Shown piece after piece: positions 1 through 38,940 of a stretch of 64,000 bases of DNA (position 1 is the stretch's first letter; the number at the start of each line of letters is the position of its first letter). The DNA comes from Hyaloraphidium curvatum SAG 235-1 (lineage: Eukaryota; Fungi; Monoblepharomycota), in contig JAIVFI010000016.1 in the NCBI GenBank assembly GCA_025558095.1, forward strand, positions 372,001-436,000, given 5' to 3'. Below the pieces are notes generated by a model. The model was not told the DNA's origin. It searched no databases and was given only the letters and a program-made list of their open reading frames with translations. The position numbers and the translations under genes were made by a program.

Positions 1-3000
1 TACCCCGGGGCAAGGAAGATGCGCTGCAGACCGCAGAGATCAGTCGCGGGTCCAGCCCGCGCACAGCAACCACGCCCACCTCGTGCGAGGAGCCCGTCGC
101 GCCCGGGAACTGGTACACGAGGTAGTAGCAGTTGGGCCCGTCCTGCCCCGCGGGGCACAGCGCGTACGCCGCCTGGCGCGGGTTGTTGAGCACCACCTGC
201 CGCACCCACTGCTCCGTCTCGGGCAGCGTCTTGCCCTGCCGGTACTTGGGGTGGCGGTTCATCTCCTTGGCCTTCTCGCGGATCGGATCCACGTAGACCG
301 TGAGGAGATGGTCCAGGTCCTCGAACGGCGAAGCCGACTTCATGTCCCGGATCTGCCACTTGGGGACGCCGCCCTGCACCACCTTGCTGATGGCTGGGGA
401 AGCCGGGGCGAACAAAGTCAGCCGGAACCCACCACGGAGCAGGAATGCAACGCACGGATGTGCCAGAAGATGTTCTCGTCCGTCTTCATCACCACCACGA
501 GGTCCCCGATCTTGGCCGACGGCCGCAAGAGCATCTCGCCGACCGCCTTGCCCGCGAGCTCCTTCTGGCTCAGGTCGGCCGTGAGGTCCTTGCGGTAGAG
601 CGGGTGGTTGACGTTCTCCATCGCCTGGCTGGCCACGCGACGCCGCTGCTCGTCCTCGCGCTTCTTGGCCTCTTCTTTCTCCCTGTACGGGTTGAAGAAC
701 TCGTCCCGCCTGGCCGCCGCGTCCTGCTGCCACCTTGCCAGCGTGTCGACGTTGACCTCGAACTTCGGAGCCTCGGTCATCACGCTGACGTCGAAGCCCT
801 CCTTCTTCCAGTCCAGCGCCAGGATGTCGCGCACGACGACGCGGGCCGTGTGACCCTCCTGGACGTCCTTGAGGTTCTCGTCGGCGGGATCAAAGACTTC
901 GATGACGCCCTCGACGCCGCCGGGGAGCTCGACGTAGATGCGCTTCTCGAGCTTCTTGCGCACCGTGGCCAGGAGCGGGCAGTTGGGGAAGAACTTGGAG
1001 ACCGGCTCCTTGGTCAGCATGAAGAACAGCTCTGAGATGTTGGGGTACAGCTGGGTGAGCGTCCGCGAGTCGCCGTAGGGGCTCTGGAGCTCGGCCTTGA
1101 TGTCCACGAGCGTCTGCTTCTTGAGCTCGTTGTTGCGCTTCTCGAGCTCGTCCGCGTAGCCGTCGAGGTCGAGCTCGTTGAGCTTGCTCGTGATGTCCTT
1201 GGACGCCATCAGCTCCTCGACGTACTGCGACGGCTGTTCGTCGTCCTCGGCCAGATCGTCCGCATCCACCGCGTCGGCAGCCATCTGCCGCGCGAGCGCG
1301 TAGTCCTTGACGTGTATGCGCGTGTCGTCCAGGACGTCGATGTGCGCATTCCGCCGGCCAAAGTGGTACTTGCGGATCCGGATGAAGCTGTTGCAGTTGA
1401 AAAAGACGTTGGGTCCCACGACCTTCTCCGTGACCAGGTCCTGCCGGCTCTCGAGGCCCGGCAGCTGCTTCTCCTCCACGATCCTCGCCAGCTTGGCCAG
1501 GATGGCGCCGGCTTTGCGCGGCCCGAGGCCGCTGACGTACTGCAGCGTGTGAGCCCTGTGCCGGTGCTTGATGGCTGCGTTGATGTCCACGCCGACCCTT
1601 CCCACCGCGTTGATGATGGCGCGCTCCAAGTTGCGCACGAGCAGGTCCGCGGGAGCCGAGGACTGGCGCTCGTACAGCTTCACCTTGGTGATGTCCTGGT
1701 TCTGGTTGAAGAGCGAGGCGTAGGCCATGACGGGGTCCTGCGCCTTGCGCGCCAGGCCGATGCAGTACCGGAGAGTCTCGTTGTACTCCCGGAACTCCGC
1801 CTTGGCCTCGGCCGAATTCTTCCAGATTTGCGCCGTATCGTCCGTGACCCAGTGGATCTCCAGGTGCTGCAAGAAGGTGTGGCTCTTGCGGACCTTATCC
1901 ACCTGGTCCTGCACGTCCTGGAAGAGCCGCATGGCACCGACCGTCGACGCAGCCATGACCACCACATCCGGCCGCGAGCTGACCAAGAACTCGGCCAGGC
2001 GCTCCAGGTCCGCCTGCTTTGGCGCCTTGGCCGGCTCCGGCGGGAACCCGGGACGGTCCAGAAAGGCGGCGCTCTGAGCCACGCTCTGGTCGCGCCCTCG
2101 GTCCTGCATACGAGCCAGCTGGATAAAGTTCGCGACCAAGCCGTCCTCGTCCAGCGTGACGGCAAAGGTCGTGGCGTTCCGCCCGCCATCTCCCCAGCTC
2201 ACGGCGGCAACGCGACAGTCGCGGCGCGACCGGTCCTCCTCCTCTTCATCGTCATCCGACTCGGTATCGGACGCCCTCCCGCGCGACGTGGTCTTCTCCT
2301 TCTTCTTGCGCATGAAGGGCGCGGCGGTGAGCTTCACGGCCAGCTGCGTCTGGCACTCCCTGCAGATGGTCTCGGTCGCTTCCGTGAGCAGCTTGTTCTT
2401 TAGCCACTTTGAAGCGTCCGCGGAGACGGCATGGAGCGCGAGCTGCAGCACCTCCTTCCTCTGCCGATTCCAGATCTTGGCAACGTCCGAAGTGTTCTCC
2501 GACTCGATGAACCTCTCCAGCGTGTTGACCCACTGGGCCCTGTCGGAAATGTCCACCTCGATCGTGACCAACCCTTCCGCGGCGGCTCGAGATATGAGCG
2601 CAAACTGGCCCTTTAGAGCTTCGTTGCGGTCGCCCTTGGTGTTGTAGCCGACGTTGCCCGACCGGAAAGCGGCGACGGGCTTCTCGTTGATGTACTTGAA
2701 GCTTGCGTATTCATGGTCGTCCCCGATGATGTCCCGGCCCTTGGCGGTCGCCGCAACGTTGATGACGGCCGACTCTTCGAACTTGCGCCGCACGATGGCG
2801 CGGAATCGGGGATGCGCCGCGATCTCCTCCGCCAGATGCTTGTTTGCAACGGCGAGAAGCAGCTCCGGTCGCTTGTACTTGGCGTTCGTGTGCCGCGCCA
2901 TGGCCTCCAGTGGCTCGACGGCGTCGTCTTCCGGGAAGCAATACTTCCGATCCATGTCGCAGCTGCGCACGAAACTGTCCACGTCGATGTGGTAGTGCTG

Positions 3001-4795
3001 GAAGTTTCCCGGGGCAACGTGAGACCATGCCGGCGAGCAAAAGCCGTCCGCTCCCTACCTGTGTCACTTCGCCGATGCCCTGGTTCTGCGCCAGCTCGTA
3101 CGACGTGGGGTGGGTCTTCGCAGCAGGCCGCCCTTCGAGCTCGTCAAGCTTGCGGAGTTCCCTGCCATAGTGGAGGAAGATGTACTTGCGCACATCCTGC
3201 ACGCCCTCCACCGTGTCGATGAACTCGGAAAACGAGTCGATTACGTGGTCCACCGCCGCCCGCCCTGCGGCTGCTTCGCGCACGCGGTTCACGAGCGTTT
3301 CCAGCTCCTTCAGGCGCGCCGACCGCGCTTGGTACGCCAAGTCCATGTCAAAAACCCGCCACAGGGCTTCGGGGTCCTGGCCCAGGTACGACACCCAGTA
3401 GTCCTTGCGGTGTGCCGCCAGGAAAGGCACCTCCATGAAGTGGTTCTCCTCTCCGCGCATGAACCACAGCAGCCGGCGAATGACCTCCACCATCCTCGAG
3501 TCCGCCTCGATCGCGCCCATGCCCGGGTTCATCTCCTGCCTCCATTGGCGCGCGAGTGCGATGGCCTCGTCCTCCAGATCTTCCTCGGACTTGGCCGGCA
3601 TGTACGCCTGGTTCTGGTCCATCTGAAGCAGCTGCGGGGACGGACGGACGCGTTCGGACGGGATGCCCATGGCGACGGCCAAACCACACGTTACCTGGAA
3701 GCGCTCGGGAATGTCCGTTTTCCGTATGAGCTCGTCCTTCTCCGTCAGCATCTTCTCCACGAGCACGGTCGGTTCGTAAATGTCCGTCAGCTTGAGGCTC
3801 TGCACCGCCGGGCGCAATTCCTCGTCCTCCTCGAGGTAGTCGTCGTCGCCTGCAGGCTTCCCAGCGGCGGCCTGATTGCAACGAGCGTGAGAGGAGGGAG
3901 AGCCAGTTGCCCGGCGCGACGCACCTTCTTCTTGAGCTTCTGGATGTGCTCAAAGTACGTGTCGTCGCCGAAAACCTCGACCAAGAAGCGGTAGGTCTCC
4001 TCGTCCACGCCCGACATGGCCGCATTGTCCCTCATCTTCTGCGACTCCTGCCTGCGCATCCGTCGCCGGCGCTCCATGAGCTCCTGCTCGTCGCCCGACT
4101 GCTGCTCGTCGTCGACGATGAAGTCGTCCATCTCATCGCGCTCCGACAGGCTCTCCCGCTCGTCGGCATCCCCGTCTCGGAAGATGGCCTCGTTCAGGTT
4201 GTCATCGTCGCGCCCGCGGTCCGGCGAGGGGCTGCGCGACGAGGCCCGGTGCCGCTTGATGCGGCGCTTCTGGCCCGTGTTGGCCGCGATGAGCTCCAGA
4301 TCCTCCTCATCGACGTCGTCCTCGTCGTCCTCGTTCTCGTCCGAGTCGCGATCCCGGCCCCGTTTCCTCGAGCCGCCGTCCCTCCGGCCGCGCCCGCCGT
4401 CCGACGCGTCGCTCTCCTCCACCTCATCGTCGCCGACCACGAACCGCTTGTCCTCCTCCGTCACGTGCTCATCCAAGTCCTCGTCCTCCTCGTCCCTGCA
4501 GCGAAGCGACCACGGGGAGCGTTAGACGCGGAGCTGGGCCCGGTGGACGTTTGGGAACCCACTCCTCGTCCGAGTAGAGCTGCATTGGCAGGAGGGACCC
4601 GGCAATTCAGCAACGGACCGCCGCAGACGCCGAGCAACCCACCCCGGGCTTCTTCCTGGACGGGCGCGAGACCTCCTCGCCCTCGTCGTCCGAGTCGACC
4701 CTGCGCTTCTGCGGCCTGTCGTCCTCCCCGCTATCCCGCTCCGGCGACCGCTCCCGCTCGCGCTCTCCGCGGTCGGAGCCCTCGGGGCTCGACAT
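1..4795 (-). CDS. SPT6: Transcription elongation factor / histone chaperone Spt6 (multi-exon, 3' end runs off the window)
   Basis: Acidic N-terminus (DDVDEEDLELIAANTG, DDFIVDD), DIYEP..L...MLT..D..IR..DIPERFQ, YqgF-like core, HhH motif LQYVSGLGPRKA, LDDTRIH, S1-like region and SH2 start (GEMLLRPS). ORFs 3787-4476, 2711-3817 and 418-2982 are joined by short introns; ATG at 4795. Confidence 0.95.
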
Positions 4796-4936
4796 CGCAG
4801 CGCAGCGGCCGGCAGCGGGTGGAGTTTGGGAGGAGGTGGGTGCCCGCGGATTTTCGTAGTCACCGCAGCCTAGCGCCTTTCCACCCGCCCTCCACCAGCG
4901 TGCAGGCACCGCAATAGTCACCGCCCGCCCTTCGCG

Positions 4937-5881
4937 ATGTTCGCCGCCACGTTGCTCCGCCGCTCCGCCGCGGTGGTCCCCCGCCGTGCCTTCTCGCTCT
5001 CGGCGCGCGCCCGTGGGTGCGGGATGCCGCGCGAGGCGCCGCGCTTCTGACCGGCGCCATCCACCGCATCCACACGGCCGCCGCACGTCCCTAACCTCGC
5101 TTGGCGCAATCCTCTTTGCTTCGACGTTCCATGCTTGTGCCGGGGACTTTGGGGGCCCCTGCTCCGCCCTGCGGCACGGTGCGCCACCCGGCACCCGCAT
5201 TAGTCGCTGGAGCACCGTCGTCGAAGAACCTCGCCCTGCCCCTCGGCGACGGTCACGTGGAAGGTGTGATTGCCCGGTCGGCTGCTGGGATCCGGGTGAT
5301 TAACCGGTGGTGTTGCCGGAACTCGCGGTGCTTCTTCTCGGACCGTCCCGCTGGGCAGACGTCCACGGCCTGAGGTGACGTCTGCCGGCCTGCACAGGCC
5401 TGGGATGCGGTTGCTCATGTTCGTTCCCATTCAGCGAGCCGGTGTACGACAGCGTTCCCGGCTTCGGCGAGCCCGGCAAGATCCCGACCAACTACGAGAT
5501 TGCCGTCGGCATGGAACGGTTCGAGATGCTGCAGAAGCTCGACGGCAAGGTCACCTTCGACCACCTGGTGCCCATCGTCGCGGAGCGCAAGCCCACGCGC
5601 AAGGACCCCTTGGTCGTCAGGGGTGTGGACCACGAGGCGTACATCGGCTGCTCCGGTGCGTGCCCTGTCTGGACGCCGTCTCCCCTTGACCAACGAAGCC
5701 CTTGATGCAGGATTCCCGGCCGAAAGCCACGAGCCCGTCTGGCTGACGCTCAAGGACAACGGCTACGTGTACCGCTGCCCGGCCTGCGGCTCTGCTGTGA
5801 GTCCCGCGGGAGCCGCTCGCACGATCCTGCTAACCTATGGATCGGCAGTACAAGTACGAGGACATTACCCACCACCACTGA
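4937..5881 (+). CDS. COX4: Cytochrome c oxidase subunit 4 (fungal) / Vb, multi-exon
   Basis: Mitochondrial presequence MFAATLLRRSAAVVPRRAFSLSAR; PG.IPTNYEIAVGMERFE; Zn ligands IGCSG, ESHEPVW, YRCPACGS; stop TGA 5879-5881. Internal exon boundaries uncertain. Confidence 0.88.
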
Positions 5882-6125
5882 GCAGCCGCCGGGATTGGGG
5901 CGCGCTTTGGGGACGGCTCTATTTGCCGCTGCTGATGCCATCAGGATGTACTGCTAGGGGGTCAAGAGACTTTATCACACGATTTCGCTGGCTGCATGTA
6001 GATGGTATCGGTCGCGTCCGCCTAGAAGGGCGGTTCTGCTGATTGGGCTGTCCGCCGTGCGAAACGGAGGACACGCAACCTTCGCAGACTGCCCAATGTG
6101 ACCTCTGGACGGCGCCTCCCGCACA

Positions 6126-9100
6126 ATGGACTATGTTGCCCGCGCCTTTGGGCGGCTTATGCCGTCCATCGTACAGCGGCGGCTGGTCAAGTTTGTCCTC
6201 AAGGTGTGGCGATGCCGGGACGGAACGTGGACCGCGGTCCAACGCGCACCGCTGCAGCAAACCTTCGGCTCCCTCTTCGGCTCCGATGTCGATCTGGAGA
6301 ACGTTGATGTCGAGCTCGCCGACGGACACGTGGTTCTGCGGGACCTGGAGCTGAACGTCGAGGTGAAGCCATGTGACCGCTGTCACCCGGAGCTCTGAAC
6401 CCCGGAACTCGGACCGCAGAACCTGAATGCCTCCCTCGAACATGCTCCGATTGCCGTCGTATCCGCAAAGCTGGACCACGTGCGCGTTCAGATCCCCTGG
6501 GGTGATCTGGCGGAGGGGAGGGTGCTGGTTGAGGTGCAGGGACTCGAGGTTGTCGCGGAACCAAAGCTGCCCCAGGACGAGGCCGGTGGGGGGGCTGCGA
6601 TTGGAGCGCTACGAATTCCTGCTTACGTGCCGTCGTTCGCAGACATGTTCAAGTCGGCCTACAGCACGCACATGTCGGCCAGCATGCACCTGGCGGAAGA
6701 GTTCTTGGACGCGGAGGGGATGCCGGAGGACTTCGATCGAGCGTCTCCGCCCGGTGGAACGAGTGCGGATGCGGAAGCCGGGGGTTCCAGCTTGGGATCG
6801 GACTTTGGAGGCCTCGAGTCGCTTGCTGACTTTATCGACGGTGTTTTCGGGCGAAGCGAGGTGTCCATACGGAACACATCGGCCGTCTTGCGGATGCAGG
6901 ACGGATCGGGCACGGGCTTTCGAATTGGTGTGGGCGAGGTCACCGTGTCGGGCGAGGTCCTTCAGGATCCAAGCTATCGGCGACCAGGTGGGGCTGCGAA
7001 GGCAGCACGACGGTCGGCGTTTGTGGCCGGCATCCAGCTCGCTGTCTTCGGTCCATCCGCCTCTGCCTCTGGGCAGACTCCGCACGGCGACTTTGTCGTG
7101 CTGGCGTCCCCGGAACGCAGCAGGATCGAGGTCGACGCGGACTACGAAAGGGAGCTCTGCAAAGGCGGAGATTCCAACGTCGCGGATTTTCGGTACAGGT
7201 GGAAGCTTGCAGCCCGTTTGCCGCTGTTCTTTGCCCGATTGCAGCCCTCGGTCTTGCGCACGGTGCTCCATGCGATATCGAGTCATGCATCTCCGGGACC
7301 GTCTGCTTCTGATTCTGCCTCTGGAGCCTACGCGCAAAGCGTATCGCACCGCGAGCAGGAGAACTTCCCAGGTATTGAGATCGCAATGGGCGGTCTGGAA
7401 GCTTTCGTGGCGTTCGAGGATGGGCTGGATTGGCTGGTCGCGGGCGACTTTTTTGAAGTTTGCTCTTCCTTGCCTGCAAACCGCGCTTTCGGAGGCCGAT
7501 CCGATCACCTCCACCTTCGGTTGCAAAAGGCTGGTTTGAGTTTGTCTCCGGACCGTCTACGGTTGGACCTCGGCGATCTCGAACTGCGAGACTGGAGAGG
7601 TCGGACATTCGTCAAGATTCTTGAGATGTCGTCCTCTCCTGGGGCCTTTGATGTGAACGCTGATGGCTCTCTGCCTGCGGCCGAACGAGAGTTCCTTTTT
7701 CCCAAAGCAACGGGACGGAGACTGACATCTCCTACACCCGCACGGCCCCCCGTCGTCGTTGTGGATCTCGATCGCAAACCAGCTGTGGCCGGCTCGCCTG
7801 GCACTGCGTCTCCCGCCAGTCAGGTGGCAGTTTCGCTGGCTGCGTTGAGGTTTCGGCTGGATCCCACAATGTGGCAGCGAATTCAGACTCTGTGGCAGGC
7901 ATGCAGATTCACCGATGCCGCCCGGTCATCTCTGGACTCGGCTTCCGACTCTGACGAAGAGAGCAGCATATCACCTCCTTTTCAATCGCTTTATGCTCCG
8001 CGCTGGGAGTGTCAGATCGATTGCCCATCGTTTTCCATGTGGTTGTTTGGTGGAGCGATTGAAGGTCCCACTCGGGCAGGCCCCAAGGATGGCGCCGCCG
8101 TTTGGCTCACGACGACATCGCTTTCCTTGACGATGGGCCGCGGAGCCGGGCTAGGAACGTTTGGATGGGCTCCCCACCTGGCAGTCGCCACCGATGATCT
8201 CTCCGTGTCTGTTGTCTCTTATTTGGATGGCACGGCGGGAATCGGTGCGGTTCGTTCCCTGGTTTCTGTCGGTCGCAGCCCCGGGAGTGAATCAAGGGCG
8301 ACGCTTGAGGTTCTCGGCGTCCCTGCAACGAGTGCTGAACCGGAATCTGCCGGCGGCTACTCCATACGTGGTTCAACAGCTGGAACGCAAATGCTGCGCT
8401 CGTGGTACGACTTGACCGGCAGGGATCGGAGTCCGAGCGCTGCAACAGAAAGTGGCTACGAGGACGCCCCGGTCAGCAGCCAAAGTCCGGGCGGACCAGA
8501 GACCATTGGCTCGCGGCTCCAGTTTCGGCTACGGTGCCCTGCGATTGTCGCTAGCGCTAGCGACGAGGCAGTGCGCGAGGTGCTAAGCTTTTCAGAGCAC
8601 TGGCGGGGCATTTTGTTCTCTGAAAGTGCGACAGCGCCGCACAATGCAACGCAGTCGTCGGACCGTGGATCGAACGTGGTTTTGCTGGTGCACGTCGAGA
8701 ACGGTGAGTGGGGCCAGTTTGATTCTTCCCGTAGCCTGATCTGGAGCGGTACCCCTAGCTACTCTGAGGTACACAAGCCCGAGGACTGCGCGGCTGTACG
8801 TTGCGCAACTCGAAGGATGTTCGGTCGAGTATGGAAACGGCTCTTTCAAGGTTGGCGTCGATGCGCTGGAAGTTTTGGAGCTGGACGGCACTGCGAAGGA
8901 CTCCTTTGCTGCTTTCCTGTCTCTCGTGAGTGGCACAGTGGATGTGAAACCGTCGTCGAACGAGATCAAGGTCGTCATGCGACTCGGAAGTCTTTCGGCG
9001 GGAGTGGAATCGTGGAGCGCACTTGTCGAAGACCTAGGCGCATTGCATGACTGGAGCAGCGACGGACGGTCCCAGCTTTCAGGGGACATCAAGCCCGTCG

Positions 9101-11498
9101 CCTTCGACATGCAGGTGCTTCACATCGAGTTCCAACATCCTGCAAGCGCGTGTTCAATCATTGCCGTCGTCTGGGCGCGGGCCCTTTACGTCAGCGGATC
9201 CCGAACCGGATCGGGGGTGTTCAGCTCCGGAAGCCTAGCGGGTGCCACGCTCTTGATCAAGGAGGAACTGTCATCGAAGCGAGGCAGCCGCCGTGTACCT
9301 GGTCTTGCTCGACCTCCCCGAGACCCACTTACATCCGTCGGCTCGGAGCCGTGGAGAGAACGAGGGCTAACCGACGTGGCACACATTCTTGACGTTGCTT
9401 GCACTTTCGCAGCCGCCGAGGGAGATGTGAAGGTGAATCGTCTCGCGATACGCTCGTCCTTTCTAACGAAAGCACAGGCCGACGTTTCGCGAGGAAGCAT
9501 GTCTTTGGAAACCTGCGCTGACTCGTACGCCAGCTTGCTGGCTTTGGTGGACTACGTAGCAGCACTCTTCGCGGAGAAGGCGTAGGTTTCCGCTTTGACC
9601 TGAGCCCCGAATGCCCGTCGATTATTCCTCAGTCCCAGTGCTTCGCGAGCGCCGGCCGAACGACTCCATCTGGCAAGGTGGAATCCGAGTAGCACGGGCA
9701 ACGACGTTTTCGGTGAGCTCAGCAGTGCCCTGCTTGAGGCTTCTCACAGACGTACCCATCGGTTTGACAGGCGATGTCGACGATTCTGCCTTTGCTCCAT
9801 CTTCCGCGACCACCGCAAACCCAGTGGATCCATTTCCGGACACTCTCAACATAATCGAGGACTTCTACGCCGCGAGCAATCATGGAGGGTCGCACCAGGA
9901 AGGAGGGGAATTCGCAGCCCGGATGCACGTCAACGAGGTTGACTTTGCCGGTGACGACTCGGATGCGCAGGGAGTGGGAGATTACCTGCCGCTGCCCATC
10001 GTTGATGCGTTCTTCTCTCCTGCATTCGCACGGCGTGTTCCGGATGCGGGCTCGGAGCAGTATCCCCGCCGTTGCATCAGAATCCGCGACATCGCCTTCT
10101 CGTGGCGCCTTTTCGGCGGCTACGATTGGCCTTTTGTGCGATCATTGGTAGCTAAATCGGGGCCAAATGCCGCTTTGTTTCCGGCGACTTCCCGATCGGC
10201 TTCTCCGCTCATTGAACTCAACGTTTCTGGCATTTGCCTGGACGTCGCAACGCTTGTGGGACCAAAAGTCTCCGCATCCACAGCGGCTTTCCGCGTTCGG
10301 GAATTGGTGGTCAACGACAATGTCGCGACGTCGACGTGGTCAACGATGGTCACGAGCGACGATCCAGACAGCCACGATCATCCGCGAGAAACCGACGAGG
10401 CCACTCTGAAGATTAGTGCTGTGCGTTTTCGGCGCGATGCGGAACCAGATGAGCTGCGGCTCAAGGTAAGCAACTCACCCGGCGCCGTTGTTCGCGCCCA
10501 GCTGAACCTCCGTTGATGCGGCAGGCACACCTTGCACCATTGCGACTCCACATCGACCAGGACACCCTGGACGTTGCGGTCAACTTCTTTTCCTTCGTCG
10601 GCCAGCATTCACACCAGGCTTCGGCAACCCCTGTAGCGGTCGACGAGCCCCCTTTCATCCAGTCGTGCGACGTCTATCCTCTGTTGGTCACCCTGGACTA
10701 TAAGCCGAAGCGCTTGGATGTGGGCAGCCTGACGGACGGCAACGTAGCCGAAGTTGCCAATTTGTTCCATCTCACGGACGCGAAGATGGAGATGGGCTTT
10801 GTCCGCGTCGGAGGGGTGCGTATCGACAGCGAGCCGGAGCTGCCCATGCGAGCAACTCACGATGTGTCGTGCAGATCAGCGGATGGGCAAGACTCGTCGA
10901 GGAAGTGGCAAGGCGATGGTTGCCGCATGTCTTGTCCAGCGGCGTTCCCGGGGTGGTCAAGGGTGTCGCGCCGATACGGTCGGTAGTCAACATCGGAACG
11001 GGGGTTGCCGATCTCGTCCTTCTTCCGATCGAGCAGTTCAACCGGGACGGAAAGATCGTGCGCGGGATCCAAAAGGGCGCCATGTCTTTCGTCAAATTGG
11101 CTGGGGTCGAGGTCCTGAATGTGTCGAGCAACATTGCTCTCGGGACTCAAGGTGTGTGGAGCGCGGAGGGGAGACCACATGGCCTCATTCGCATTTCGGT
11201 AGCCCTCTTCCAACGCGCCGACGAGATGCTCGCGGGCGATCGGAGGCCCAGTGCCTCCGACTCTCGTTCGCGAGGCCGGGGGCTTGATTCGGCTCCGCGA
11301 TCCATCGCAGCGGACCTGCGAGAAGTGGCGAGCACCATTGTCGCCATTCCGGTCGACGTGCGAGAAGCGGCGAACTCGCACGGGATCGTGGAGCAGGTCG
11401 TTCGCGTCGTGCCGTTGGCGTTGGTGCGGCCTGCGGGGGCCGTGGCGGGCGCCGTTTCCTCGCTTTTGCAGGGTCTGAAGGATACTGTGTCGCATTGA
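6126..11498 (+). CDS. ATG2: Autophagy lipid-transfer protein Atg2 (multi-exon; 3' end approximate)
   Basis: Chorein_N-like start (MPSIVQRRLVKFVLK...LRDLELN...IPW), WRLFGGYDWP, DNVATSTW, LAPLRLHIDQDTLD..NFF, LDYKPKR, GVAPIRSVVNIGTGVADLVLLPIEQF..DGKIVRGIQKG. Confidence 0.92.
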
Positions 11499-29150: not shown

Positions 29151-29200
29151 TTTCGTTGTTGACTTTTGAGGTGGACGAGCGCGTCGATCACTACAAGTCG

Positions 29201-29223
29201 CACACATCGCCTCTGCTACTAGC
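29201..29223 (+). repeat. Left degenerate terminal inverted repeat candidate
   Basis: CACACAT-cgcctc-TGCTACT-a-GC versus the reverse complement of 37829-37851, CACACAT-atggaa-TGCTACT-t-GC. Confidence 0.55.
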
Positions 29224-29254
29224 TGTTGCTAGAAAATCCGCCGGCAGCGCCCCA

Positions 29255-32200
29255 ATGCCAGTGGCCTTGGCATCTCCATCTGCAAACTCTGCGCCTCGGG
29301 CTTCTTCACAACTACCTGTGCCCCGGACGCCAATGTTGGTGGACGGCCCCGCCATCGCAACTCGGCTCAAGCAGACTGGGAAGCTGAGCTCGGCGGAGAT
29401 TTCTGCGTCGTTGGGAGTACATCGCACGACCTATTTTCGTTGGATCAAGTGGGCATCGCTGCCCCCGGCATCGAGAGAGGGAGTTCGCAAGGTCCGGAGC
29501 CGCCGCAAGGTCACGGACCAGATGGTCCAGGACATCGTACACGAGGCAAAAAGCCAGGTCAGGGTCACCCAGCAGGAGCTAGTTCTTTTTCTGGCAGAAA
29601 AGTACGGGATCCGCGTCTCCCAGCAGCACGTTTCGCGGCTGCTGAAGGCAAATGGCGTCACTAGGAAGAGGCTCACCGTCAAGTCTTCCGAGGCCTTACG
29701 GCAACCGGAAAGGCATCTTCTGTTTCATAGTCGCATCGAGAATGTGCCTATGGAACGCATGGTCGCACTGGACGAAACGGCTTTCGAGCTCAACGACCCG
29801 GGCAGCCACGGGTACTCGGACCGCGGAAGCCGCGCTGTTGTCTACCTCCCGCGGAATAGAGGTCCAAAGGTGACTCTGTGTCTCGCAGTGTCACCAAGTC
29901 CTCGTCCGGGAGCAGTTGCTGGAACGGTGATCTCGTATGTGATCTACCGTGGCAATATGAACACGGAGCGATTCTGCGCTTTCTTGAGGTCTGTTAAGGC
30001 AGACGGACAGGGCCCCAAGAACGCGCTGAACATTGTGATTGACAATGCTGGTTACCATGGATCCCCTTTGAGGGCAAAGAAGACCGCAAATGGTACTGCG
30101 ATTGTAGAGAACACCTCCGGCAAATCGTTCCTCGCGGTTCAGGCGGTGGCGAAAGCCAACAACCTCAACCTCGTGTACCTGCGACCCCGTACTCCCGAGT
30201 TCAATGCGAGTGAGCACGTGATAGGGCGGTTGAAGCGCCTTGTCCGGCGAGACTGTCCCTCCACTGTGGCCGATCTGATTGACGCTGTCGAGAGGGCGAT
30301 ACGAATTGTTGGGGAGAGCGATCTCTGTCCCACTTTTCGGCACTGCATCAAGCTCAGCGCGGAAGAGAAGGCGCGCATTCAGCGGGAGATGCTTCGGTCC
30401 GACAACCTTGGTTCCACGAGCGGGTGCATACAACCGGAAACGGCAACTGGCGAGATCACGGGAGACACAAACTCGACCCGCATGGACACCGGATCGGGTC
30501 CCGGGGCCGCGCCCAGGAACGCGGTGGACGACGGCATCGCTGCTCGAGAAGCGGCCCGCCTGCTGCAGGAGGTGGGGAACTCGTCGCCGTCGTCATTGAC
30601 GCGTGCCGACCTCCGTTTGACTTCCCAGGCCCGGGAACTCGGAGTGGCCGAGGTCGACGTCCACAAGGCCTACGATGTGAACCAGCTCTATGGCCGACTA
30701 CGAGGACTCAGTAATGGAGGTGCTTTCGGATCGGCGTGGAACACGTTTCTGGACGAGCTGCAGAACGCCCGCGCCACCGCCTCCAAGGACGTCATCGGCA
30801 CCCTCACCTCCCTCCCTCCCGACCAGTTCCGCGGAATATGCTCCGCAGTCGAGAAAGGCAAAGGCAAGGAGGTCCGCGCGGCCCTCTGCCGGAAGCTGCG
30901 GAACTTCGTCGAGCGACGTCGGCTCCCCGCGCCCGTCGCCGACGAACCATCGCCGGCCACTGCGGGCACCCCTTCCGGCCTCTCGCCGCCTCCGCCGCTC
31001 TTTCCAACTGTTTTAGCGAACCCGATTTTCGCTCCAGCCGTTGTCGGAGCCCCGGGGGCGCAGCTGGACGCTCTGCTGGACTACGCTCTGGAGCCGACCG
31101 TGCCCAAGGACCTGCGTGAGGCTGTCAAGTACGCGTGCTGTGCCGGGCTTTCCGACCTGGACCAGGGTCGTCCGGACGGCAGTTACTCGTCCCTCTCCGC
31201 GACGAGGAAGGAACGACTTTTTGTCTCGCGCCTGGTGGCGGTCGACCGTGAAGGAGGCTTCCACCGCTGGACGGCAGCGACCGAGATCCGTCTGCGTGGG
31301 CGGCTGATGGCGAGTGATGCGGCTCGTTTGGATGATTTCGTCCATTCCGTATTCCTTGCTCGAGTGCGGCACTTCGTTCGCCAGCCGGAAGCCGGGCTCA
31401 TACCCGTGGAGGACTTCGAGCTCCCAGCCCAGACCCACCTCCGCCGGCCGCAGAACTGGCGCAAGATCCTGGAGGACGCCCTCGGCGCGCTCAAGAACGC
31501 GTCCGGGAAAGCCCTGTGGGATCGGAGGAGTCGTTCGCTCGAGGTTGCGCTCGCCAGCCTGACTCTGGAAGAGCGCATGGCGCTCGTTGTCCGCACGGAC
31601 TTGCCCAAGGACATTGCCTTTCAGCAGGCTGAACAGCGCCGCATCTTCTTCGAAACCTTCCTCTGGGGCCCCATGAAGGCCAACGAGGCGCTCCTGGGCA
31701 TACCGGATCGTGGTCCGGTGCCCGCGCTGGTGAGCAACGTTCTGGCTTCCAGCTCCAGCATTCTGGGCTGACGGTGCACTCCTCGCAGCCGCTGACCTTC
31801 TACGAGATCTTCCAGCCCACGAAGGGGCTAAGAGGCGTGAGCGAAAGGGCGGACGCGGACCTCGGCTCGTTCTTCGACAAGGCTTTGGCTGCTGTGCACG
31901 GAGAGGAGGGGCGCTCGGTCCTGTTTGAGTTGATCTTTTCTGGCCACCCGATGCGCGACCATTTGCTGGACTATTGGGGGTTCGATTCGCTCGTGAACCC
32001 TGTCAGCGACGCCGCCCGTCGCGCGAGCGTCGCGTTCCACCTGAAGTTGGACGCGCTCGAAAAGGCCTTTGACGCCAAGCGCGTCGACATCTGTTCCCTC
32101 GGATGCCTTTATTGTCCCTTCACAGTGGCGGTCGAGGGCCGGGTGCCGGCTCGGAACCCGGAGCGGAAGAGAAAGGACGCGAACGGCGCTACGGCCGGCA

Positions 32201-35200
32201 AGTCGTCGGATCAGCGCCAGTACGACGCTGGCGTGCGGCTCGGGCATCACGTCGCGGGGAAGCACTTTACGTGCCAGATCTGCCGCAAAGACGGCAGGCG
32301 TGTCACGTTTGCGTTCGAGGCCAAGTACCGGGAACACGTGGAAACCCAGCATGCAGATGCTCCTCTCCAGTAGGTCTCCGCAAGAGATCCACACGGGGTC
32401 ATTACTCATCCTCGCTGTCCCAGCCTCGTCATCCCCCGGGCCTTCACATCACGGCGCGGACTGCTGCTCGCCCAGGTCAACTACATTGTGCCGCACGCCT
32501 GCCGCACTCAAGCAACGGAAGCGGAGAGTGCTGCCGCCGGAGCAACGGCGATGGACGTAGACGGGGCGAAGGACGAAGGTTGCGCGGCAAAGGAGCCCAG
32601 GTGCCACCTCTGCCTGTCGACAACCCGGGGACACCGGCGAGGATGCCGGCCGGCTTTGCGGCAAGCTGCGGAGAATGCGTACAAGGCCGTCGGGGATGCG
32701 GAGCACGAGCGGCACGTGACCGAGCGCGCCATGTCGACAACCTGGTTCTTGCCCGAGGAGGCCCTCCACCCCTGGGCGATCGAGCCGCTCAAGAGCGTGG
32801 GGCTGCTGATTTCCCGCGCCGCAACCGGTGCGGCGTCCTTTGCAAAGCTCGTCTGGACCTCGGCGATGCTGGCAGTATACAACGGTCTGCTGGACAACCG
32901 CTCCGTTCCCCCTGCCATCCTGCGCAAGTTCCCACCTTCCGTCGTAGCGAACATGGCGATGCTGGTGGTTTTGAACGAGGGGGCGCTAAACGCCAACGCA
33001 GGCACACGCCGGAGGAAGAAGCCGCGCGGGGACATCGGCACGGATCCGGGCGTGGAGATCACCGCAACTGGCGCGGGACTCGGCACGGTCACGGAAATGG
33101 CGGAGGACGATGACGAGCCCGCTGCCGAAGATGGGGAAGAAGAAGAGGAGGGCGGAGATTTCGGTGAATACGCCGGGTTCGCGGACTTCCTGGCCGGCGA
33201 GGGGGAAGCCGACGGACCTGAACACGTGCTGGAAGCTCTGGGCGCCGGCTTCGGTGGCGACGGGATGGCCGACGACGGCGAGGTTTTTGACGGTCCCGGC
33301 ACCCTCTCCGTGGAGGAGCATAACGCGGCGGCTGCGGTTCTGCGGGCGGTAGTCACCGACGCCTACCACGAGCTGAGGCCGGACCTGGCTTCCGAGTTTG
33401 CCGACTGGCACCACTACCTGCTGCGCGGCCCGCTGCTCGGTTACTTCAGGAATCTTGCCGCAGGACGCCTCCGCACCGTCCCCATCCAGCTGCGCAAGGA
33501 GCTTTCGGACCTGATCCGCACCTTCCTGAAGGAGGAGCTGGACAACGCCGTGAAGCGGCAAAAGATTGGCCACATCTTGCGCTGCGTGCTGGCCAAGCTC
33601 GGGACGGGTGATACGAACTTTTTCGGCACCAGCTTCGCGGCCTTTGGCTGCAGCCCCGAGTTTGACGCGGAGGCTCGGCTTCGCCTGACCTGGCTACTCC
33701 TGCCGCTATCCGGACGCTCGCTGAATACGATCATGGACCTGCGGGAGCCCCGCGACCGGCCAAAATGGCCAGCGACTGTCCTACAGCGCGTGATGCTTTC
33801 GCTGAGGAAGCGGGACGTGGAGCTGAAGCGGTCGGCGATGGCGACGCGTATCCGCAGCGTCGCCATATCGCCGCAGAAGGCGCGCGGCAAGTCGCAGGAC
33901 GAGGAGGACGCAAAGGCGGCGTACCTGCTGGATCTGCGCGACCGGGCCCAAGCCGAGCTCCGCCGGATGCCGCCTGAAGCGATCAGGCAACTGCAGGAGG
34001 AGGAGCGGCACGAACTGGTCGAGACGTATGTGGCTGACAAGCTGCAGTTGCGTGGCATCCCCGTCGAGATCCCCTCCGTGCAGGGGGTTGGCATCCACCC
34101 CACAAAGAGCCGCTTTTGGGGGCCGGAGTGGACGGAGGGCCTGGACAAGGAGGCGCTGTTGCAGCGCTACGAGAGGGAGCTGCTCGATGAGAGGCAGAGG
34201 GCGCGTCAGCTGAGCACAGCTGAACTTCGCCTCGCGCAGACGGGCAAATGCGCGGACGCGGACGCGTTTGGCTCCGAGGCTCTCTTTCAGACTATGCGGC
34301 TGCGGGAGGAGCAGATCGCGAGGCTCAAGATGCGGCGATCGTCAAGCGTTGCCTCGACCGGATCTGAACCAAGCCCGACGGCCTTGCCGCAAAGCTCGAC
34401 ACCGACACCTTCATCATCGAGTGCGGCGGACAGCGCTCGGCGCGTCGCCGCCAGCTTCACCACCGAGGCCGCAATGGACGTTGACCCTGCGAACGAGGCG
34501 GAGGGTGGTGGACCCTCTGCGACTCTGTTCCGCGGAAGTGCCGCCGTGGACCTGCTTTGCGCGGACATGGAATGCTCCGACTCGGAAGACGGCAATGTTG
34601 AGGCTGCTGACGACTTCCCCACGATCGGCGGCGGGAAGCAGAAGTCGAAAAAGGGCCGACCGATCCGAGTGGACCCCAAGCCGTGGCCGAAGAACGGGGC
34701 ACCCAAGCGATTCCATGGCTACGTCACGACGGGGAAGAAGCGGGCGCCGCTGTCGCCCGAGGGCAAGGTGAAGAAGCGATTGGGGAAGTCACGTGTGGCG
34801 GCTCGCCGATGGTCCAGCGCGGCCGGAGGGAGCGGGGAGAAGAGCGTGGGTGACGCGTTCTCTCCCGTGGTGAGGTCGTCATTCTGATACGTTTCATGAA
34901 CAACAGCAGTCAAGGACCCAAGGCGGCACCACCGGAGGGACCTGGGCCGCGGGCGGGATCCGGCCGCTCTTGACCAGGATTTCCCTCACCCCCATAGCCC
35001 TGTACATAACCGCGAGCGATCTGCCCGACCTCTTCAAGATGCTCGGTGTTAAGCTCGGCCCCTTGGCACCGGACGTGGCCAAGATCAACCCCGATTACCT
35101 GTTTGGACACCTGTTCAACAATGGCAACAAAATTGTTCAGGACGAGCGTCTTTTCCGCCTCCATCAGGAGGGGAAGCGCTCCCCGGCAGGGCACGCGGAC

Positions 35201-37601
35201 GCCTCACGGCCGACCCTTCGCCGGTCGGGCGATGCGCTGCACTGCTCGTGCATTGCTGGCATGGTTCTTCGTGGCCCAACCTTTGCCATTGTCGAGGAGC
35301 ACATGGCCGTCGTGCCCAGGGCTTCGAAGCCGAAGGCACCGCAGCAGCAGTGGACGGAATCTGAGCCCAAAGTGACGCCGCCCTTGGATTGTAGGTCCCC
35401 GTTCTTTCATCGGAGCTTCCGCGCCTAACCTGCTTCCCAACAGTCTTCCTCAGCGCGCCATCGCCCGAGCCGTGTTGGGAGTGTACGGAGCCAGAACAGC
35501 ACGCCCACTGGCACGACTTTTCGGCCCAAGATTCGTTCGGGATGCCCGCGGTCCTCGTGCCCACCCTTCCGCACGGTGCTCCGGACCCCCCGCCGGGCAT
35601 GGCCGTCGTTGATGGTATGTCATCCTTGCCGCTGCACTCAGCGCTGCTGATGTGTTCATCTTCAAGCTCACGGCTGGCTCCATGCTGGCGGGACCGTCTT
35701 CTTCCCCCCGCCCGCCATTACCGACGATGCCGAGCACTTGCTGGTAGATCCCGACTCGACTCCTTTCACGTGGATGGACGTGGATCAGGATTGGATCGGG
35801 CTCCCGCCTCCCGCCTCCATCCCCCCCGAACCCCCACCCGCAACATCACCGAACTCCTCCACATCGGTACCTTCCGAGTCTCCATCCTCCTTCACTCCCA
35901 CCCTCGCTCCTCCGCCTCCTCTTCCCATCCCGACGGCCTCGCCTGTGGGTGCCGCAGGATCTTCTCCGCTTCCGCCCTCTTCTCCACCTGCCCCTGCTCA
36001 GCCTCCAACCTCCGCTCCTCTCCCACCGCACCCTCGCTCTACGTGCTCATCGATACCTCGTCCGCCTGTTGACTGGAAGACCTCTATACCGTGCTACAAC
36101 TTTAGCCGGAAGGCGGACGCGGAGAAGCTAATGCCGCACTTCCTAACAATGGCAACGGAAGAGGAGATGTGGGATGCCGCCCAACGGGGCCTTCCCGTTT
36201 CTGGTGGCGTTGTCTTTTGCGATCCAAATCGCTGGTTCTATATGCAGGGCGGTCGACGACTTGCACCCGCGTTTGTGGCCCGCTGCCTGGACCCCGGCCC
36301 GGGGAGACGGTTCGACTTCGCAAACACCCACCTACCCGAGCTTTCGGAGAAGATCGTCGTCACCAACCCGGACGGCACCACATCGACATACATTCTTGTG
36401 CGCGCCAACGTGCCCAAGGGGTGCATCTCTGCGGGCCGCATCAAGGACATCCGGCTCGAACACTCCTGCGACGAGACGGCCCGCGTTGCGCGGGCGACGC
36501 AGGCGGCGCCGCGCAACATCCGCTGCCGACACCACCCGGACGGCGCCGCCAAGCTCTCGGCTCACCGCCCGACCAACCGCGGGCATGCGAACCGCGACGA
36601 GAAGCTGCGGAAGGCCGAACGGAACTGGACGCTTTTCCCCAACCCCGACGGCGGGTCCGATGCCGACGGGGACAGGTTCTGGGGTGGTATCGCCGGCTTT
36701 GGGCGCGCCGGCGTCCGCCAGCTTCCGGAGCTCATTCTCGGCGTGCCTGGGGACCTCGATCGCCGGATGTGTGGTTACCAGCACGCTTCTAGGAAACTGG
36801 CGTCGCTGCGCAAGTCGCACACCCTCCCCTCCGGCCTGACAATCGAGGCTTGGGAATCGGCACTGCCTTCGCAGCGGACGACGAGCTGCGAGCAGTTTCG
36901 CAAGTACGCCCATGCCATCACGAAGGAGCTCTGCTCCGTCGTCAAGTTCTACTGCAATGATGAGATATGGTTTGTTCACGGCCAGCCTGCGTGATTGGGA
37001 TGCAGCCTTCCTGACGCCTTCTTTTGCAGCCGCGACCGCGTCCGTACCATCCGGAGGCGTCGGCAGGTGCTCGACTGGATCGCCCGCGACCTGTGTCGCA
37101 ACCCGTACTCGGGCAAGTTCGATTCCCAGACCACCTTCGCCTATGGCGCCGCCCGCTTTGGTCACGCAAGCAAGGGCGGTCCGGCTTCTCGGATTGTGCA
37201 GTTCAGGGCCGCGCTCGCGGCCGTTGGAATCCTCGTTTTGATCAACGAGTACCTGACGAGCCAGATGTGTTCAAAGTGAGTTTTCCCTCGTACTTCGCGC
37301 CTGATTTCGCGGCATTGATCGCCCTCTCGGCAGGTGCCTGACGACCTACGTTGTCCCCATCACCAACCCCGGGTGCCGTGGCGAGATCCGGGGCGCCAAG
37401 TACTGCCCGACCTGTCGCACGTACTGGATGAGGGACGTCAACAGCTGTCGGTCCATCGGGTACCTGTTCTGGTTCGCGATCGCTACCGGTGGCGAGCGCC
37501 CCTGGCCGTTCAAGCCTGACACCAGGAGGCGCAAGCCGTCGAAGCCGGCCGCGAAGTCCGCTGGTACGCTGATTTTGCTCGCTTTGGAGCGTGTGAGCTG
37601 A
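29255..37601 (+). CDS. Giant transposase-Fanzor fusion protein (~2,650 aa; ~2,710 aa ending at 37836 if a further intron 37564-37612 is spliced)
   Basis: Predicted exons 29255-31729, 31789-32369, 32424-34845, 34907-35390, 35444-35614, 35667-36969, 37030-37275, 37334-37601 sum to 7950 nt (2650 codons) with no internal stop. Every intron is GT-AG and 52-61 nt, with a CTRAY-like branch site. Confidence 0.75.
29333..30360 (+). CDS. IS630/Tc1-mariner-like transposase module (HTH + HTH + DDE) at the N-terminus of the fusion ORF
   Basis: HTH SSAEISASLGVHRTTYFRW; second HTH TQQELV..L.EKYGIRVSQQHVSRLLK..GVTRK; catalytic VALDET (D 29771), VIDNAGYH (D 30041), YLRPRTPEFNASE (E 30212). Confidence 0.92.
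36200..37601 (+). CDS. Fanzor1-type RuvC / zinc-finger nuclease module (intron-split) at the C-terminus of the fusion ORF
   Basis: RuvC-I candidates VVFCDPN (D 36221) or CLDPG (D 36290); ESALPSQRTTS..QFRKY...VVKFY; FAYGAARFG..SKGGP; INEYLTSQMCSKC (E 37247); CPTC..YWMRDVNSC.SI (D 37434); GERPWPF. Confidence 0.88.
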
Positions 37602-37749
37602 TGGCGTTGCAGGCACCACTCTTCAGACCGGATCCGTTCCCACCGTGCCCAAGCGTCCTGGTGCGGTGGCGCGGGGACGCGGCTCTGCCAAGAAGGTCAG
37701 GCTGGACGGCCCCGGCCGTGGGTCTTCTTATCTTTCTTCTCTACAAATT

Positions 37750-37870
37750 GGCGGGTGGTGCGAGCCCTCGCCTGTGCCCGATTGTGGGCTTGATCGAGGT
37801 GGAGTCCGAGAGGACCGCCTTTTTGGTGGCAAGTAGCATTCCATATGTGTGTAGCCAGACAGATACAGAA
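37750..37870 (+). ncRNA. Candidate Fanzor omegaRNA (scaffold ~37750-37851, putative guide ~37852-37870)
   Basis: Three consecutive hairpins just 3' of the RuvC coding region: 37750-37772 (GCGA tetraloop), 37776-37789 and 37797-37820 (GAGA tetraloop), leading up to the right inverted repeat. Confidence 0.55.
37829..37851 (-). repeat. Right degenerate terminal inverted repeat candidate, followed by TA
   Basis: Plus strand GCAAGTAGCATTCCATATGTGTG|TA; two 7-mers match the left repeat with identical 6-nt spacing. Confidence 0.55.
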
Positions 37871-37889: not shown

Positions 37890-38940
37890 ATGAAGCGGAA
37901 GCGGGAGGAATGGACCGCCAAGGAAAGCGATGCCCTCTACGATGCGGTCGCTCGCTTTTCGAAGGCCCGGATCGCGGACATTGCCCGCCATGTGGGCTCC
38001 AAGTCCCCCCTGGACGTCCTCGCGCGGATACACTTCCTGGACCGCGCGCTCGCCGAGGCCGAGGCCCTCGGCCTCGTCGGCCCCGAGTCGGACGGCAAGC
38101 ATGCCAAGTACGATGCGGTCGAGAGCCCTGCGGCGCGGATAGAGGCCGAGGAGCGCGAGTCGGAGGAGTCGGCCCAGCGCGAGGACAGGGAGCTCCGCGA
38201 GGCCCCGCAGACCTTTATCACCAAGGAGATGCGGGCTCAATGGAAGAAGCCCATGGAAATCTTCAACCTGCACATGCTTGCTGTTCTGGCGGAAAGGTGG
38301 GCCTTGTCGTTCGGCGGTTCTGTCAATGTCTCACCGCCTCGGACCAGGGTGTACGTGCGGCACAGCGATACGGCCATCCAGCGCGATGCGTTACTGGAGC
38401 TCTACGACGCGCTGGCACGGTGGCTTCGGCAGACTCTCGCGCAGGTCGTTTTCTTTGCGCAAGCGCGGAAGCCGCGCCGCCAACGTGTCCAGGTGAAAGG
38501 ACCGTTCTGGCCACCGAGCCAAAGCTGACGCGTGTCCTTGGGGGCAGGTCTCGGAGGACGACGTCCGTGACGCCTTGGAGGCGATGCCTTTTCCGAATCG
38601 CAACAGCGAGTACTACATCTCCCACTTGCTTTGGACCGGGAAGGGACGCCGGGCATTCAATGCCCACTACGGGGTCAACCTGGACAGTCTCGGAGGATCG
38701 GAGCAGTTGGGGGTTGCCACAGGGGGGGCAGATAGTATTGAGGAACAAAACCTCAACTCGACCATGGCCCCTTGGCACGAAACGAACCTTGGCCGCGTTG
38801 GCTGCTCGCCGGAACCCGGGGGGGACGAACTGAGTGCAGCAATCGTCGTGGAGGACGACACGAGCTCGGACAGCTCGATGAACTCCGGGCCTCCGGACGG
38901 TTTGGGCGATACAGGAAGCAATGCTTCAGATGCCGATTAA
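37890..38940 (+). CDS. Myb/SANT-domain protein, possibly Rrn5-like (RNA Pol I upstream activation factor), multi-exon
   Basis: WTAKESDALYDAVARFSKARIADIARHVGSKSPLDVLARIHFL Myb-like repeat followed by a PAA-acidic segment. The Rrn5 assignment is by resemblance only. Confidence 0.55.

Follow-up and report, generated by a model that had tools for sequence, protein, structure and literature searches.

An expressed transposase-Fanzor fusion gene in a recently mobile transposon of Hyaloraphidium curvatum

A locus in the genome of the freshwater fungus Hyaloraphidium curvatum SAG 235-1 raises the question of whether a transposase and a Fanzor nuclease can be parts of one and the same gene. Fanzor and TnpB nucleases are thought to help their own transposons persist. 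The locus lies in a stretch of 64,000 nucleotides (nt), hereafter the window (positions 372,001 to 436,000 of contig JAIVFI010000016.1, assembly GCA_025558095.1; 63% G+C), to which all coordinates refer unless another locus is named. An initial annotation of its letters had described a single spliced reading frame of about 2,650 amino acids (aa) that fuses an IS630/Tc1-mariner transposase to a Fanzor. Both modules could be identified and all introns are spliced; the transposase-Fanzor architecture is real, expressed, conserved and mobile. Four diverged families with this order, transposase to Fanzor, are present in the genome, and the window holds a member of family 1.

The spliced reading frame and its transcripts

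The seven candidate introns all have GT..AG ends and measure 59, 54, 61, 53, 52, 60 and 58 nt. The exon phases, derived from the exon lengths, are mutually compatible, and exons 1 to 7 are stop-free in the predicted frame. Once joined, the eight exons give a frame open from the ATG at 29255 to the TGA at 37599-37601, with 7,950 nt of coding sequence, that is 2,649 codons plus the stop. The stop-free spliced frame that had been reported at 29255-37836 therefore holds, but its end at 37836 does not, the true end being the TGA at 37599-37601. Stops are expected about once in 36 codons at 63% G+C, or some 70 times in about 2,650 codons, and none occurs in frame. Because the frame stays open over this length despite such a stop rate, and because its exons are conserved in a second family, a chance origin is excluded. 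The exons are as follows.

29255..31729, plus strand: exon 1, 825 codons; transposase with two helix-turn-helix (HTH) parts and a DDE domain (HTH-HTH-DDE), then a conserved 475-aa extension
31789..32369, plus strand: exon 2; C2H2-like zinc-finger pattern at 32266-32352, read by eye
32424..34845, plus strand: exon 3, 807 codons; middle region with acidic and low-complexity stretches
34907..35390, plus strand: exon 4; putative start of the Fanzor module (N-terminal WED-like part)
35444..35614, plus strand: exon 5; short and poorly conserved, both flanking introns spliced in RNA
35667..36969, plus strand: exon 6; proline-rich linker, then the predicted Fanzor body with the RuvC-I aspartate (VFCDPNR, 36212-36232)
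37030..37275, plus strand: exon 7; RuvC-II glutamate and first CxxC (INEYLTSQMCS, 37241-37273)
37334..37601, plus strand: exon 8; second CxxC at 37401-37415, RuvC-III RD motif at 37428-37445, TGA at 37599-37601

Our transcript data come from one public RNA run (X1), in which 89% of the sampled words of 31500-37450 were found. The X1 transcript contigs omit exactly the seven predicted intervals, each with GT..AG ends, and the earlier proposal of seven GT-AG introns of 52-61 nt in compatible phases is thus borne out by sequence and transcripts alike. One contig (record 1) joins exon 1, which encodes the transposase, through introns 1 and 2 into exon 3, extending from left of 31500 to 33226, while other contigs tile the remaining part of the 31500-37450 region. 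A lack of reads across introns 1 and 2 had been named beforehand as the outcome that would speak against a fusion, and record 1 crosses both. The introns are retained in all five genomic copies of the element (alignments have no gaps at any of the seven), and exons 3 and 6 are stop-bounded at an identical open-frame length in every copy. Since the introns are present in all genomic copies, a processed DNA copy is excluded as the source of the spliced form, which must be RNA. Single-nucleotide polymorphisms (SNPs) between the copies lie at two of the contig breaks, 33227 and 34980, and explain them, as is expected from de Bruijn assembly of several expressed copies. A single uninterrupted mRNA across exons 1 to 8 is likely. 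Three short pieces, at 99% identity or more, also occur in a freshwater polyA RNA metagenome (X2).

Record 1 is a 6,636-nt contig that reaches 5,022 nt left of 31500, about 2.7 kb past the left end of its source copy. It carries a C at 32808, so that its source is not the copy in the window. Transcription of the element may enter from, or overlap with, flanking DNA.

The transposase, the Fanzor module and the region between them

Exons were searched singly in every search. Exon 1 matches the NCBIfam model NF033545 (IS630 transposase) at 109.7 bits, against a cut-off of 100, and Pfam DDE_3 at 46.9 bits, against a cut-off of 28.6. The former match delimits the following domain.

29360..30304, plus strand: IS630-type transposase domain, aa 36-350; putative catalytic residues D173, D263 and E320

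Matches to HTH_33, HTH_23 and HTH_32, each under its cut-off, precede the DDE domain, and phmmer found no match for the transposase domain in the PDB. The residues D173 (ALDET), D263 (VIDNAG) and E320 (NASEH) are kept in families 1 to 3, and the glutamate is lost in family 4. From the second aspartate to the glutamate the spacing is 57 residues, where 34-37 are usual; a group-specific insertion accounts for the difference. Judged by its residues, the D-D-E triad of the window gene looks catalytically intact, and the HTH-HTH-DDE arrangement first read from the letters of the N-terminus is confirmed by the IS630 and DDE_3 profiles. An ordinary IS630/Tc1-like transposase gene of 381 aa is also present, at L023:1298-2443 (plus strand), about 3 kb past the 3' end of the family-3 Fanzor; its product is 25% identical to the fusion transposase, and its stretch from the second D to the E does not have the 23-aa insertion.

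The C-terminal exons, searched singly, gave no match in Pfam, NCBIfam or the PDB sequences, because the domain is split by introns, with intron 7 inside the zinc ribbon, and is diverged. An external Fanzor profile, built from 19 database proteins and no H. curvatum sequence, matches exons 6, 7 and 8 in collinear order: aa 367-430 of exon 6 at profile positions 436-494, exon 7 at positions 499-573 (47.7 bits) and exon 8 at positions 587-640 (40.4 bits). From this order it follows that exons 6 to 8 encode successive parts of one predicted Fanzor1 C-terminal half.

The class of this module was approached through a relative in family 3, whose intron-free frame L023:5234-7294 (contig C2) holds the whole Fanzor region, and the PDB-profile and fold comparisons given here were made on that relative or by way of intermediate database proteins. 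Intron-free sister frames pass the cut-off of Pfam PF07282 (TNB; 26.3 bits) with 32.2 bits in family 3 and 31.3 bits in the other. An exhaustive HMMER search with the family-3 frame found 119 proteins, and those of full length (550-850 aa) carry this domain at their C-terminus. Alignment A1, composed of the family-3 frame and 19 of these 119 proteins, matches as a profile the solved Fanzor1 proteins SpuFz1 (8GKH; E 7.7e-34), GtFz1 (E 2e-30) and PpFz1 (E 4.5e-23). Fanzor2 (E 2e-7) and TnpB (E 9e-4) follow at a distance, Fanzor1 being far ahead of Fanzor2, TnpB and Cas12f. The fold comparison that the initial annotation had proposed was run on the family-3 frame: the AlphaFold (AF2) model is confident over residues 370-610, and its best Foldseek match is SpuFz (E 1e-6).

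In the window gene, the aspartate of VFCDPNR (exon 6), the glutamate of INEY (exon 7) and the aspartate of MRDVNS (exon 8) align with the near-invariant D347, E538 and D573 of A1. The four zinc-ribbon cysteines are present, as a CxxC over the exon 7/8 joint and a CPTC in exon 8. Six residues lie between the RuvC-II glutamate and the first cysteine (INEYLTSQMC), and a glutamate at this position before the zinc finger is typical of Fanzors (PMC13565253). Taken together, the external profile, PF07282 in the sister frames, the D-E-D residues and the four cysteines uphold the C-terminal RuvC/zinc-finger Fanzor that had been claimed, and we assign the C-terminal part, at least exons 6 to 8, to a predicted Fanzor1-type RuvC nuclease with D-E-D and C4 zinc ribbon intact. 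Exon 4 is probably the start of this module, as its resemblance by eye to the A1 consensus suggests. Two other long proteins, P0021 of Amoeboaphelidium occidentale (1,366 aa) and P0080 (1,252 aa), likewise have a Fanzor zinc-ribbon domain at their end; the roughly 1,100 aa that precede it in each are dissimilar to exons 1 to 5 of the window gene.

About 1,480 residues (the remainder of exon 1 plus exons 2 and 3) separate the two modules. No Pfam or NCBIfam match was found for this middle region, nor a Pfam match for the finger pattern of exon 2, and ESM Atlas look-alikes of the exon-1 extension and of exon 3 gave no usable match. The region is nonetheless kept as protein in family 2, at 45%, 36% and 33% identity with E values down to 1e-78.

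Copies, ends and sister families

The initial annotation had called for a search for other copies and for the same fusion in related fungi; this genome yielded five near-identical copies and three diverged families. The five copies of the window's element lie on contigs C16 (the window), C5, C36, C25 and C4, are 99.8-99.94% identical and stand 5-8 substitutions apart. Their comparison defines the element, together with two features of its 3' end and one of its left flank.

29196..37857, plus strand: complete transposon of 8,662 bp; resembles the other copies from 29196 up to 37857/37858
29196..29223, plus strand: left terminal inverted repeat, imperfect and bipartite (CACACAT ... GCTACT)
37829..37857, plus strand: right terminal inverted repeat, by comparison with the left end
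37602..37857, plus strand: 3' non-coding region, 256 nt from the stop to the right end; by position, where a Fanzor guide RNA is expected
37788..37823, plus strand: conserved hairpin block of 36 nt; hairpin GGTGGAGTCC / GGACCGCC, then a T-run
29181..29191, plus strand: flank motif GCGTCGATCAC, external to the element and ending 4 nt before its left end

The inverted repeats of 28-29 nt match at 17 of 27 positions with a 1-nt offset, in a by-eye comparison with the reverse complement, and their bipartite pattern is common to the family-2 ends. The element has a single gene, which begins with its ATG 59 nt inside the left end and stops 256 nt short of the right end. One copy, on C4 (L016), is defective: a left-end deletion (equivalent to window 29228-29256) removes the ATG, and a 1-nt insertion is found at about 35302 in exon 4. 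The remaining four look intact; two copies, L014 and L015, have a common 9-nt deletion upstream of the ATG. On this sequence evidence we take the element to be a young, multi-copy and recently mobile transposon. The suggestion that the gene might be a domesticated derivative is excluded, since it lies between inverted repeats in five near-identical copies.

The window's element sits in an intergenic gap of about 190 bp; to its left a minus-strand frame ends at 29044, and to its right an ATG on the plus strand follows at 37890. Long ATG-started frames also lie 20-150 nt to either side of several other copies, which is weak evidence in G+C-rich DNA.

Family 2 comprises ten copies of 8.6 kb with 99.7-99.9% mutual identity. 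It is collinear with every exon of the window gene except the short exon 5, at 33-81% aa identity and E values down to 1e-82. Exon 1 is 45% identical over aa 27-825, exon 2 is 36% identical, exon 3 is 33% identical over 655 aa (E 1.6e-78), and exons 4, 7 and 8 are 42%, 81% and 68% identical, respectively. The family-2 frame is open from 703 to 9141 but for four stops. Three of these fall inside GT..AG intervals of 57-66 nt, two of which are at the positions of introns 1 and 2; no enclosing GT..AG interval was found for the fourth (8650). Intron positions 1, 2, 6 and 7 are common to families 1 and 2. In family 2, the frame equivalent to exon 3 runs without interruption into that equivalent to exon 4, and the middle region is thereby tied to the Fanzor module.

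The 36-nt block at 37788-37823 is 92% identical to all ten family-2 copies, whereas the surrounding 250 nt do not align. It is the sole non-coding piece conserved with family 2, the stem being kept and the loop differing, and its distance from the right end is 34 nt in family 1 versus 85 nt in family 2 (L018 9142-9178). The family-2 reading frame stops at the TGA that opens the block. In the window, the frame beyond the TGA at 37599 is open to a second TGA at 37785-37787, at this same block; protein-level conservation with family 2 was not found in the tail.

Families 3 and 4, both on contig C2, are single-copy and damaged; their transposase is split over two reading frames, and their middle region is unrelated to that of the window. 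Two contigs from other samples, L047 (Logan SRR26194948) and L048 (JGI 3300043314), with 56-58% G+C, hold relatives of families 3 and 4 in which a frame of at least 1,200 aa is followed on the same strand by Fanzor exons after gaps of 75-95 nt; both contigs are too short to reach the upstream region in which a transposase would be expected. A metagenome scan with exon 1 found no relative, and one with the Fanzor C-terminal alignment found 18 loci, none of them with this transposase within 10 kb.

Readings of the fused gene and its place among known systems

We favor, as probable though some way from assured, the reading of an autonomous IS630/Tc1-mariner transposon whose sole gene is the 8-exon, 2,649-codon transposase-Fanzor frame. 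The message would be translated into one predicted polypeptide of about 290 kDa, whose DDE part would perform cut-and-paste at the inverted repeats. The Fanzor part would bind RNA from the 3' end of its own element and cut the emptied donor site or an unoccupied allele, upon which repair would copy the element back. Such donor-site cutting and copy-back have been shown for TnpB and proposed for Fanzor. In TnpB elements, 250 bp or less typically separate the end of the gene from that of the transposon (PMC10691335); here the 256 nt after the stop and the conserved 36-nt hairpin would fit the geometry of an omega RNA encoded at the 3' end. Fusion would ensure co-expression from a promoter-poor unit, in which the ATG is so close to the end, and would bring both activities to the same DNA.

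Several observations weigh against this account. A guide RNA was not found: shuffled versions of the 3' region fold about as well as the region itself (z = -0.73; the z-scores of the 3' regions are -0.73 and -0.83), and the element has no match in Rfam. The TA duplication that defines Tc1/mariner elements is not clear at the junctions, the left-junction dinucleotide being TA in three of the five copies and AA or GA in the rest, and the right-junction one CA in all five. The middle region of some 1,480 residues is without recognizable function. A profile of H. curvatum sequences only misses the solved Fanzors in the PDB and gives a weak match to TranC (E 0.066); the link to those structures runs via intermediate database proteins. 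No single read or contig covers all eight exons, and contigs cannot prove one molecule; read depth, about 1,580 at the 5' end, has grown to about 2,800 by the 3' end, which could reflect extra 3' transcripts. It is for these last two reasons that we call the full-length mRNA no more than likely. Finally, the middle region of family 3 (L023:7310-9781, minus strand) bears a weak signature of an OTU-like cysteine protease, which stays under the Pfam cut-off (E 0.011) but includes, by eye, the Cys and His boxes; family 4 (L025:8297-9844) has a His at the cysteine position.

Could the continuous frame then yield a separate transposase and a separate Fanzor, through an internal promoter, early polyadenylation or proteolysis of a polyprotein, the two acting as they do in ordinary Mariner elements, where Fanzor has a gene of its own? 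The incomplete contigs, a step up in depth after about 33,100 and the OTU-like signature of family 3 all fit such products, and the published Mariner-Fanzor elements encode separate proteins (PMC3627910). Because of the weak protease signal in family 3, processing into separate proteins is conceivable in this group of families; no protease domain was found, however, in families 1 or 2. The roughly 1,480 inter-domain codons are open and conserved as protein in family 2, where the middle region and the first Fanzor exon are one exon, the RNA links exon 1 with exons 2 and 3, and the contig breaks are accounted for by the SNPs between copies. We therefore hold separate products to be unlikely, though the most serious competitor of the single polypeptide. 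That there is no functional fusion at all, and that the frame is due to chance in G+C-rich DNA, to read-through between neighbors or to an assembly artefact, has almost no probability left. Such DNA is stop-poor, and antisense frames of 200-280 aa are indeed common in the region, but some 70 stops would be expected over this length, seven introns are precisely spliced, five independent genomic copies exist, protein conservation extends to families 2 to 4, and catalytic residues appear intact in both modules.

The flanks of the element may bear on how it chooses its targets. In all five copies, the left end is preceded, at a distance of 4, 16, 18, 19 or 20 nt, by GCGTCGATCAC or a variant that differs in one or two bases, in the same orientation; the left flanks of the window copy and of L013-L016 hold three exact and two near-exact occurrences. 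The exact 11-mer has 79 sites in the 31.9-Mb genome; for any one 35-nt window read in one orientation, the probability of holding such a site is about 4e-5. With so few sites genome-wide against three exact and two near-exact occurrences in these windows, the association of the motif with the insertions cannot be chance. In family 2, nine copies (L006-L012, L017 and L020) have a looser AAGGGAYT-like motif at a constant spacing of about 33 nt before the left end, and its significance is no more than suggestive. A role of GCGTCGATCAC as a general promoter element was rejected, as twenty other sites are without extended common context and many lie in long open frames.

These flanks could point to aimed integration, in which either the Fanzor with an RNA of the element or a DNA-binding part (HTH or zinc fingers) would tether the transposase, so that insertion occurs at a short distance and in one orientation from the motif. 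The common orientation of all five copies, the rarity of the site and the fixed spacing in family 2 speak for it. Neither GCGTCGATCAC nor its complement was found inside the element at up to one mismatch, however, and the flanks have no significant similarity to either element end, so that a target of an element-encoded guide is unsupported. Two eye-catching matches between flank and 3' hairpin in family 2 failed a weight-matrix scan, the matrix of the family-2 flank motif not pointing to that family's own 3' region, and a guide taken from the right flank of another copy was likewise discarded, one 10-nt match between two right flanks being within chance. The spacing varies in family 1, with one copy at 4 nt, only five insertions are at hand, and the nuclease triad looks intact, whereas known RNA-guided transposons use inactive effectors. 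We consider aimed integration improbable. Somewhat more doubtful still is its strongest form, in which the DDE transposase and an RNA-guided Fanzor module are coupled within one eukaryotic polypeptide and insertion or homing is thereby aimed, although such a polypeptide would explain the strict orientation and the short distance to a family-specific motif.

A covalent, expressed and recently mobile fusion suggests that a transposase and a Fanzor can act as one unit. It also makes the relation of the two testable, since there is one gene, one transcript and two separable active sites. The four parallel families, two of which may differ in their preferred flank motif (clear in family 1, suggestive in family 2), provide a natural comparison for target choice. 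Should the nuclease module or another part aim the transposase, the element would be a compact eukaryotic template for programmable DNA insertion. Without aiming, it would still be the first Tc1/mariner-type element that we could find with a single gene of 2,649 codons and an unexplained middle of 1,480 residues. Among its sisters, family 1 differs from families 3 and 4 in its unrelated middle region, and from the sister families in a different and longer flank motif.

A covalent transposase-Fanzor fusion is not mentioned in PMC3627910, PMC10530073, PMC10691335, the Nature, NAR-preprint and 2026 review texts, or the results of full-text searches, a coverage of the literature that is incomplete; within it, the initial annotation's statement that this architecture had no published description agrees with what we found. 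Mariner/Tc1 elements with a transposase and a separate Fanzor1 are represented by PGv-1 and PUl-1 (Bao and Jurka 2013, PMC3627910) and by the Fanzor1c associations of Jiang et al. 2023 (PMC10530073). Like these, the H. curvatum element is a single unit bounded by terminal inverted repeats, with a DDE transposase at its 5' side and a predicted Fanzor1 ending near the right end. They have separate genes of a few hundred residues each and clear TA duplications, whereas here one spliced frame of 2,649 codons is found and the TA is not evident. The IS630-linked TnpB of bacteria and giant viruses (branch DDE-6, Altae-Tran et al. 2023, PMC10691335) shares with our element an IS630 transposase, a TnpB-family nuclease, symmetrical ends and a nuclease gene that stops within about 250 bp of the transposon end. 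Its genes are separate and intronless and its TnpB compact; the gene described here is eukaryotic, intron-bearing and fused, with a putative Fanzor1-type nuclease.

The nuclease module itself resembles the solved Fanzor1 proteins SpuFz1 (8GKH), GtFz1 (9CER) and PpFz1 (9CF0) in its split RuvC D-E-D, the glutamate six residues before the C4 zinc ribbon and the RD motif. The solved proteins, about 600-850 aa long, stand alone and have a defined omega RNA and target-adjacent motif (TAM), whereas the module in the window is the C-terminal third of a protein four times longer and is too diverged from them for direct single-sequence detection.

CRISPR-associated transposons (CASTs) combine Cas12k or Cascade with Tn7-like transposases; their effectors are nuclease-dead and separate subunits, and they work with TnsC/TniQ. 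In a CAST-like system a guide pairs with the target, and here the flank motif is absent from the element and the flanks are unlike its ends, which lowers the case for counting the element among such systems, a short or split guide still being compatible. With CASTs and with laboratory Cas-transposase fusions (PMC10734217) the element has in common a DNA-binding protein of an RNA-guided type, a DDE transposase and oriented insertion near a recognized sequence. Were aiming to prove true, it would be the natural one-protein counterpart of both CASTs and engineered Cas-transposase fusions. It differs from CASTs in that its predicted nuclease triad is intact and the link between nuclease and transposase is covalent, RNA-guided insertion being hypothetical here.

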